From Orbicella franksi (lineage: Eukaryota), in the NCBI GenBank assembly GCA_964199315.1, contig OZ116710.1, forward strand, positions 7,440,001 through 7,504,000: a stretch of 64,000 bases of DNA, given 5' to 3'. Each line of letters opens with the position of its first letter. The stretch's first letter is position 1. Position numbers and translations under genes: made by a program. Under the pieces are notes generated by a model. The model was not told where the DNA came from. It worked only from the letters and a program-made list of their open reading frames with translations, and searched no databases. Below are positions 35,414 to 35,592 of this stretch, piece by piece.

Positions 35414-35592
35414 GGGGGCTAAGCGCTGGTATAAGGTCTCGGTGGGGTTAGCAAGGGTCACCAATGCTCTCCCCGTAAATGCTGAGAAATACCTTTCCGT
35501 CTAATATAGGCTCTGCCAGCGAAGTCATATGTCGCACATCCTCGTCTTCGTAGCCCCTGGTAATGCTAGCAGTAGCTAGCAGCTGAGCGACA
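35414..35592 (+). ncRNA. HDV-like (nested double pseudoknot) self-cleaving ribozyme at the RTE 5' end
   Basis: P1 GGGGGCT 35414-20 / AGCCCCT 35552-58 with a G1-U wobble. P2 TGTCGC 35530-35 / GCGACA 35587-92. L3 begins TCC, and P1.1 pairs CC 35540-41 with GG 35559-60. P4 TGCTAGC/GCTAGCA. J4/2 GCTGA, candidate catalytic C at 35583. P3 is imperfect (ACA/CGT). Confidence 0.75.

Follow-up and report, generated by a model that had tools for sequence, protein, structure and literature searches.

A conserved HDV-like ribozyme, predicted to be self-cleaving, at the 5' end of a coral RTE retrotransposon family

The 64,000-nucleotide stretch of coral DNA analysed here (the window) contains a copy of an RTE-type retrotransposon and raises the question of how the 5' end of such an element is defined. 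HDV-like ribozymes reportedly occur at the 5' ends of non-LTR retrotransposons, in work credited to Eickbush and Eickbush in 2010 and to Sanchez-Luque and colleagues in 2011. According to PMC3774820, which cites Ruminski et al. 2011, ribozymes of this kind cleave RTE, R2, R4 and L1 elements at the 5' junction. The 5'-end ribozymes of RTE, R2, R4/Dong, Baggins and L1Tc are ascribed to Ruminski et al. (2011, J Biol Chem 286:41286), again as relayed in PMC3774820 and PMC6765202. RTEs themselves are described as lacking promoters of their own and as dependent on co-transcription (PMC6765202). A sequence-only reading of the window had proposed an HDV-like fold with its cut at the RTE 5' boundary. 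This proposal holds up: compensatory changes are found across five RTE subfamilies, the predicted catalytic C is invariant and many copies start at the predicted cut. We thus regard 35414-35592 as the 5'-terminal ribozyme of this RTE family and predict, with a probability of roughly 0.86, that it is truly self-cleaving. No report of HDV-like RTE ribozymes in corals was found in the literature searched.

In the 179 bases of 35414-35592, all components of an HDV-like double pseudoknot follow one another in the correct order (Table 1). This includes all parts that had been read from the sequence, namely P1 with a G1-U pair, P2, P1.1, P4 and the J4/2 segment GCUGA in nested order, as well as the J1/2 insertion of ~109 nt closed by CGCTGG/CCAGCG. 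Folded alone, J1/2 has a minimum free energy of -38.8 kcal/mol (z -3.4), and none of 200 shuffled sequences folds as well. Hairpins are also obvious in the remainder of the 5' UTR (35593-35754), e.g. AAGGCG...CGCCUU immediately 3' of P2, and the first in-frame AUG of the window copy lies at 35755.

Table 1. Features of the ribozyme, its RTE element and the insertion site, in window coordinates
Feature	Position	Strand	Basis or pairing
Empty target site in paralogous unit A, ...UUUGCUUGCGA^CUUCCUUAAAAC	17585-17605, junction ~17594/17595	+	unit A/B comparison
ACTACTT ACTACTT tandem directly 5' of G1; target-site duplication or 5'-junction duplication	35400-35413	+	sequence and empty-site comparison
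Predicted self-cleavage site, at the RTE 5' boundary, between U35413 and G35414	35413-35414	+	start of homology among copies; first P1 base; start of covariance-model match
RTE-type non-LTR retrotransposon copy, APE + RT + DUF6451	35414-39377	+	Pfam Exo_endo_phos + RVT_1 + DUF6451
P1 5' strand GGGGGCU	35414-35420	+	pairs with 35552-35558; G1-U35558 wobble and 6 Watson-Crick pairs
J1/2 peripheral domain, 109 nt, branched inside	35421-35529	+	P1.2-like closing helix CGCUGG 35424-35429 / CCAGCG 35517-35522
P2 5' strand UGUCGC	35530-35535	+	pairs with 35587-35592
P3 5' strand ACA	35536-35538	+	A35538 x C35549 mismatch; sister copies have G
L3 UCCUCGUCUU, 10 nt	35539-35548	+	C35540-C35541 form P1.1 with G35559-G35560
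P3 3' strand CGU	35549-35551	+	pairs with 35536-35538
P1 3' strand AGCCCCU	35552-35558	+	pairs with 35414-35420
P1.1 GG (35559-35560) and J1/4 UAA	35559-35563	+	GG pairs with C35540-C35541
P4 hairpin UGCUAGC-AGUA-GCUAGCA, 7 bp	35564-35581	+	strands 35564-35570 / 35575-35581, loop AGUA
J4/2 GCUGA, predicted catalytic C35583	35582-35586	+	GCUGA in 31/32 aligned copies, C in 32/32
P2 3' strand GCGACA, ribozyme 3' end	35587-35592	+	pairs with 35530-35535
MITE, 491 bp, terminal inverted repeats of ~26-30 bp (CAGTAAACACCCGCATATAAGAACAC...), TA flanks	37729-38219	.	absent from sister copies

The element that begins with this fold has the architecture of the RTE clade, i.e. a single ORF encoding APE and then RT, no ORF1 and a length of ~3.2-3.5 kb. 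Two uninterrupted sister copies, retrieved from the 497-Mb coral assembly that was searched, match it end to end and span ~3.45-3.47 kb; the sister whose frames were listed measures 3471 bp and has a single ORF of 1061 aa. The 3' terminus falls at the position equivalent to 39377 in all three fully retrieved sister copies. The nearest named protein clusters consist of APE+RT proteins of ~1035-1080 aa, some of them called 'Craniofacial development protein 2', a name attached to BovB/RTE-derived proteins; as a lead, the cluster name may point towards BovB/RTE. DUF6451 was not found mentioned in the literature searched. In the window copy, the reading frame is split by the MITE, which sits inside the RT domain. 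A genome search with this MITE returned 113 matches; many are fragments of repeat ends, and several whole copies are 99-100% identical. Its ends also occur ~3 kb apart in longer arrangements (e.g. G000:C6:15274172-15277396), which may represent an autonomous parent. Another locus (L061, G000:C9:28879200-28883700, locus positions 3610-4363) carries an internally deleted RTE derivative of ~750 bp, in which 35414-36039 is joined to 39243-39377; it retains the ribozyme and the RTE 3' end and is likely a non-autonomous rider of the family.

Two independent comparisons place the 5' boundary of the element. By BLAST against 30 other genomic loci, homology to other copies begins at 35413-35415 in ~11 distinct loci, including subfamilies that are only ~75% identical; other copies lack 1-11 nt or more of the 5' end. 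The window furthermore contains a diverged duplication (unit A, ~17071-27810; unit B, ~34891-51851), and unit A retains the site without the element. The filled site of unit B, ...UUUGCUUACUACUUACUACUU[RTE]CUUCCUUAAAUC, equals the empty site of unit A plus the RTE and a 7-10-nt ACTACTT duplication just 5' of G1. As the flanks of 35414-39377 match unit A, the earlier placement of G35414 at the junction set by this empty site, the short tandem aside, is borne out. The family's conserved, covarying HDV-type double pseudoknot thus has as its first nucleotide the first nucleotide of the RTE.

Several further observations concern RTE ends and repeats in this region. A 5'-truncated RTE 3' fragment at 16966-17071, 77% identical to 39272-39377 and with the same 3' terminus, sits exactly at the start of the homology between the two units (17071 aligns with 34891). 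Four copies of subfamily 2 (L014, L015, L016 and L027) have runs of 10-17 G immediately 5' of G1 (at about locus positions 1485-1500), which may be untemplated additions during formation of the 5' junction. The window also contains a tRNA gene at 20384-20456 on the minus strand (Rfam, 56.8 bits) and, by self-BLAST, a tandem array at 15354-16129 with a period of ~37/74 bp.

Whether the fold is conserved by selection on pairing was assessed in 32 copies from five RTE subfamilies, collected in two genome searches. A covariance model was built from subfamilies 3-5 only and all 32 copies were then aligned (alignment A3). A3 was fitted to the nested helices and favours them; P2 and P1.1 were added as pseudoknots for pair counting, were not part of the aligning model and are free of that bias. 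A plain MAFFT alignment (A1), in which the P1 5' strand of the window's subfamily lay one column out of register and the P3 3' strand was scattered, was not used for counts. Omitted from the 32 rows were copies 5'-truncated by 4-11 nt (L006, L007, L008, L012, L020, L023), copies truncated within the ribozyme (L010, L011, L028, L048, L049, L051, L052, L056), one with a P4 deletion (L044), and repeat retrievals or identical duplicates (L013; L036-L039; L057-L059). L022, L024, L026, L029 and L030 were also omitted, being the same places as L031, L033, L034, L040 and L036, respectively.

In the true structure, standard pairs fill 93.0% of the cells, compared with 30.6-45.2% when the partners are slid by 1-3 columns. 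Changes on both sides of a pair are seen in 26 of the 54 pairs against 3-9 in the slid-partner controls, and the covariation score is 0.386 against 0.04-0.09. Aligning other copies had been put forward as a check on the P1, P2 and P4 pairings, and compensatory changes indeed occur in every one of P1, P2, P3, P4 and the J1/2 helices. P2, which crosses P1, is 94.3% paired with four of its six pairs compensatory (helix 7), a result free of alignment bias because P2 was absent from the aligning model; its variants are UGUCGC/GCGACA, UGUCAC/GUGACA, UGCCAC/GUGGCA, UGUUGC/GCAACA and UUCCAU/GUGGAA, with G-U intermediates in single copies. P4 (helix 10) is 97.1% paired, five of six pairs being compensatory; its stem measures 3 to 8 bp depending on the subfamily, is always a hairpin and is followed by J4/2. 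The family has a P3 of 3 bp (helix 8), with compensatory changes in two of the three pairs and the variants ACG/CGU, ACC/GGU, AUG/CAU and ACA/UGU. The J1/2 helices (helices 2-6) add 12 pairs changed on both sides and are kept in all five subfamilies.

P1 is a helix of 6-7 bp starting at G1, with three of six pairs changed on both sides and with the subfamily variants GGGGGCU/AGCCCCU, GGGGUCA/UGACCCU and GGGGUUG/(U)AACCC(C/U). In A3, the P1 of the window's subfamily remains displaced by one pair (pairs 2-7 of this P1 lie on pairs 1-6 of the others), hence a table anchored on G1 gives the better view of this helix: the closing pair is G-U in 17 of the 32 rows, G-C in 11 and A-U in two. A single U is claimed by both the seventh pair of P1 and the first pair of P3 in subfamilies 2-5, leaving an effective P1 of 6 bp there, whereas in the window's subfamily both pairs form simultaneously. 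L3 likewise differs, with 10 nt in the window's subfamily compared with 7-9 nt in the others (7 in three of them). Against this variation stands a constant core: L3 begins with UCC in ~30 of 32 rows, GG follows P1, GCUGA is found in 31 rows and the J4/2 C in all 32. P1.1 (helix 9) is CG in 28 of 32 rows at each of its pairs, and shows no covariation because these pairs are nearly invariant.

At the level of sequence, J1/2 is not singled out. Its conservation between subfamilies (68.5%) equals that of the 5' UTR downstream of the ribozyme (70.1%), which rules out that J1/2 is more conserved than its surroundings, and the whole 5' UTR, including the 160 nt 3' of the ribozyme, lies at ~66-70%.

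Searches with models and descriptors bear on how specific this fold is. The covariance model from subfamilies 3-5 finds a single match in the window, exactly 35414-35592 (94.5 bits, E 1e-21), and flags the window's P3 pair as non-standard. Genome-wide, it finds at least 72 loci (150 candidates scored), some of them decayed or without the catalytic core. Three such loci (L064, L065 and L066, on G000:C5 at 1.95, 2.08 and 12.7 Mb) lack the same 27 model positions, comprising the P2 5' strand, P3 and L3, and retain P1, the J1/2 domain, P4 and J4/2; a core-less variant thus exists at several loci. An HDV-like descriptor, also put forward in the sequence-only reading, was scanned over both strands of the window and matched exactly once, at this ribozyme, compared with on average 0.01 matches per window in 100 dinucleotide shuffles. 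It called for G1, a 7-bp P1, a J1/2 of up to 150 nt, a 6-bp P2, a P3 with at most one mismatch, an L3 of 6-11 nt with CC, then GG, a P4 hairpin and C-N-R-A; on its own it is a weak control because it was written after the candidate had been seen. The Rfam search suggested alongside it failed to recognize the ribozyme. RF00094, RF00622, the drz-Agam families and HDV-F-prausnitzii gave no match in the window at gathering score, and none even at E <= 10 on the 451-nt region around the window copy or on six loci of other subfamilies. We attribute this to the J1/2 insert of ~100 nt and to the pseudoknots, which covariance models cannot represent, and thus regard it as a limit of detection and not as a structural feature of the family.

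The window copy itself is in poor condition. Its A-C mismatch in P3 and its 10-nt L3 had been noted as reasons for caution, and the mismatch indeed proves private: in the alignment, the four nearest sister copies carry G in place of A35538, giving a perfect ACG/CGU P3, as do all RNA reads mapped here. The change is one of CpG to CpA, and C35546 in L3 is private to this copy as well. Four RNA-library runs, labelled 'coral metagenome', were mapped to the region; one run (X22) placed no reads on it. In all four runs the RNA depth stays at zero across 35257-35409 and climbs from 35410-35460 on, reads and contigs covering 35414 onward. All reads and contigs over 35538 and 35546 carry the bases of sister copies, likewise those over 35491, and none among the four runs carries the window copy's private bases. 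Hence the RTE family is transcribed, with no sign that the window copy is.

No pile-up of RNA 5' ends at 35414 was called because the depth, only 2-7 reads, is too low. One RNA contig starts at 35414 and is not counted as evidence, since contigs would be expected to break at any repeat edge. The 5' junctions of other RTE copies are traversed by two contigs, which are either uncleaved RNA or contaminating DNA. In run X24, five reads join unrelated sequence (ATGGAGGACAAGGACCTC...) to 35509; these probably stem from transcription through a 5'-truncated copy at another locus. The window RTE copy is a dead relic: its P3 is mismatched, its RT domain is interrupted by a MITE and none of the RNA reads has its private bases. 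We think that its ribozyme is weakened by the mismatch and biologically irrelevant.

Could the resemblance to HDV have arisen by chance, the pairings having been picked from a G+C-rich 5' UTR by a permissive descriptor with a 109-nt free insert? The descriptor does permit a long J1/2 and one P3 mismatch, and the Rfam models detect nothing. Yet the single match contrasts with 0.01 expected per shuffled window, every helix from P1 to P4 and in J1/2 has compensatory changes, pairing in the slid-partner controls is lower by a factor of 2-3 and the number of compensatory pairs by a factor of 3-8, and the site falls on the very base that bounds the RTE. On the covariation count, chance would seem to be effectively refuted, and we consider its probability negligible. 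A continued activity of the window copy, which would still cut a host read-through transcript within an active ribozyme family and so exert a local effect on a host gene, could draw on the fact that only one pair is damaged (P3, A-C), with the other helices intact, and that an A+-C wobble can partly substitute. The lack of RNA just upstream of the junction in all four runs, the sister-copy bases in every read and contig over 35538 and 35546, and the otherwise dead copy with its interrupted RT domain make this very improbable.

The most serious competitor, though still an unlikely one, is a conserved fold that acts as a structured 5' UTR, i.e. a translation-initiation or protein-binding platform of HDV topology that no longer cleaves, with the end at G35414 being a transcription start from an internal promoter. 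The about equal conservation of the whole 5' UTR, including the 160 nt after the ribozyme, the variation in L3 length from 7 to 10 nt and the lack of an Rfam match all agree with such a platform. However, residues that matter for catalysis only (the C-N-R-A of J4/2, the G1-U/G1-C closing pair, UCCUCG in L3 and the CC/GG of P1.1) are kept while the helices covary freely, and published RTE ribozymes of the same architecture cut at the 5' junction (PMC3774820).

For the family's ribozyme we propose the following mechanism, in which, by analogy with the ribozymes of R2, RTE and L1Tc, we infer both catalysis and release from read-through RNA. The RTE, without a defined promoter of its own, would be transcribed within longer RNAs, in which the ribozyme would fold co-transcriptionally. 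The large structured J1/2 domain would hold P1 and P2 together, and C35583 in J4/2 would act as general acid or base, so that the backbone is cut 5' of G35414. The cut would free RTE RNA with an exact 5' end (5'-OH), which would then be copied into new insertions; cleavage at this position and copying of the RNA from G1 would, we propose, be the reason why every full-length copy starts at this G. Once folded, the 5' UTR may then aid cap-independent translation of the ORF starting ~340 nt downstream, a role that the cleaved fold has been suggested to support (PMC6765202). Possibly, although we regard it as rather doubtful, the ~100-nt branched J1/2 and the structured 160 nt after the ribozyme do more than provide an activating 'pinch', the whole 340-nt 5' UTR serving as a platform for cap-independent translation or as a binding site for the RTE protein, as proposed for R2. 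A second role for J1/2 is speculative.

The coral ribozyme closely resembles the ribozymes of RTE, R2, R4/Dong, Baggins and L1Tc. Like these, it is a nested double pseudoknot at the extreme 5' end of its element with the predicted cut at the first base, it has a G1 wobble, UCCUCG in L3, a P1.1 of two G-C pairs and a catalytic C in J4/2, and its element has no evident promoter of its own. It differs in its coral host and in the presence of five covarying subfamilies in one genome, and cleavage is here predicted from sequence. The coral RTE is predicted to be cut at the junction, unlike many R2 elements, whose cut is upstream of it. Helix order and functional residues are also those of genomic HDV (RF00094) and CPEB3 (RF00622), and the coral L3, UCCUCG(U/C), is nearly identical to the L3 of HDV, UCCUCGCU. 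In contrast to both, the coral ribozyme shows no detectable sequence or covariance-model similarity to either (none at E <= 10), its J1/2 measures 109 nt in the window copy instead of a few nt, and it resides in a retrotransposon, not in a viroid-like RNA or an intron. With ribozymes of the drz-Agam-2 type it shares a long insert in J1/2, whose stable closing helix sits directly between P1 and P2. In that type, this arrangement (P1.2) speeds cleavage by 'pinching' P1 and P2, and structured J1/2 domains activate large HDV-like ribozymes more generally (PMC4908430). Unlike the single helix of drz-Agam-2, however, the coral insert is a branched domain of ~100 nt made up of the closing helix, a long bulged hairpin and a small hairpin, and the Rfam drz-Agam models do not match the coral ribozyme.

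In summary, HDV-like ribozymes at RTE 5' ends have already been published, and the coral RTE ribozyme is this known association in another host group; the understanding of how such elements work is unchanged. Our analysis fixes the 5' boundary of an abundant coral RTE family exactly and, on the reading that the ribozyme cleaves itself, explains it mechanistically, which helps repeat annotation. It also shows that HDV-like ribozymes with a large J1/2 insert escape the curated Rfam models; the model built here recovers at least 72 loci. The five naturally covarying subfamilies can be used to test how peripheral domains tune HDV-like ribozymes. If the 5' UTR does have a role after cleavage, the coral RTE family would be a natural, covariation-rich system for separating the catalytic from the post-cleavage roles of such ribozymes.
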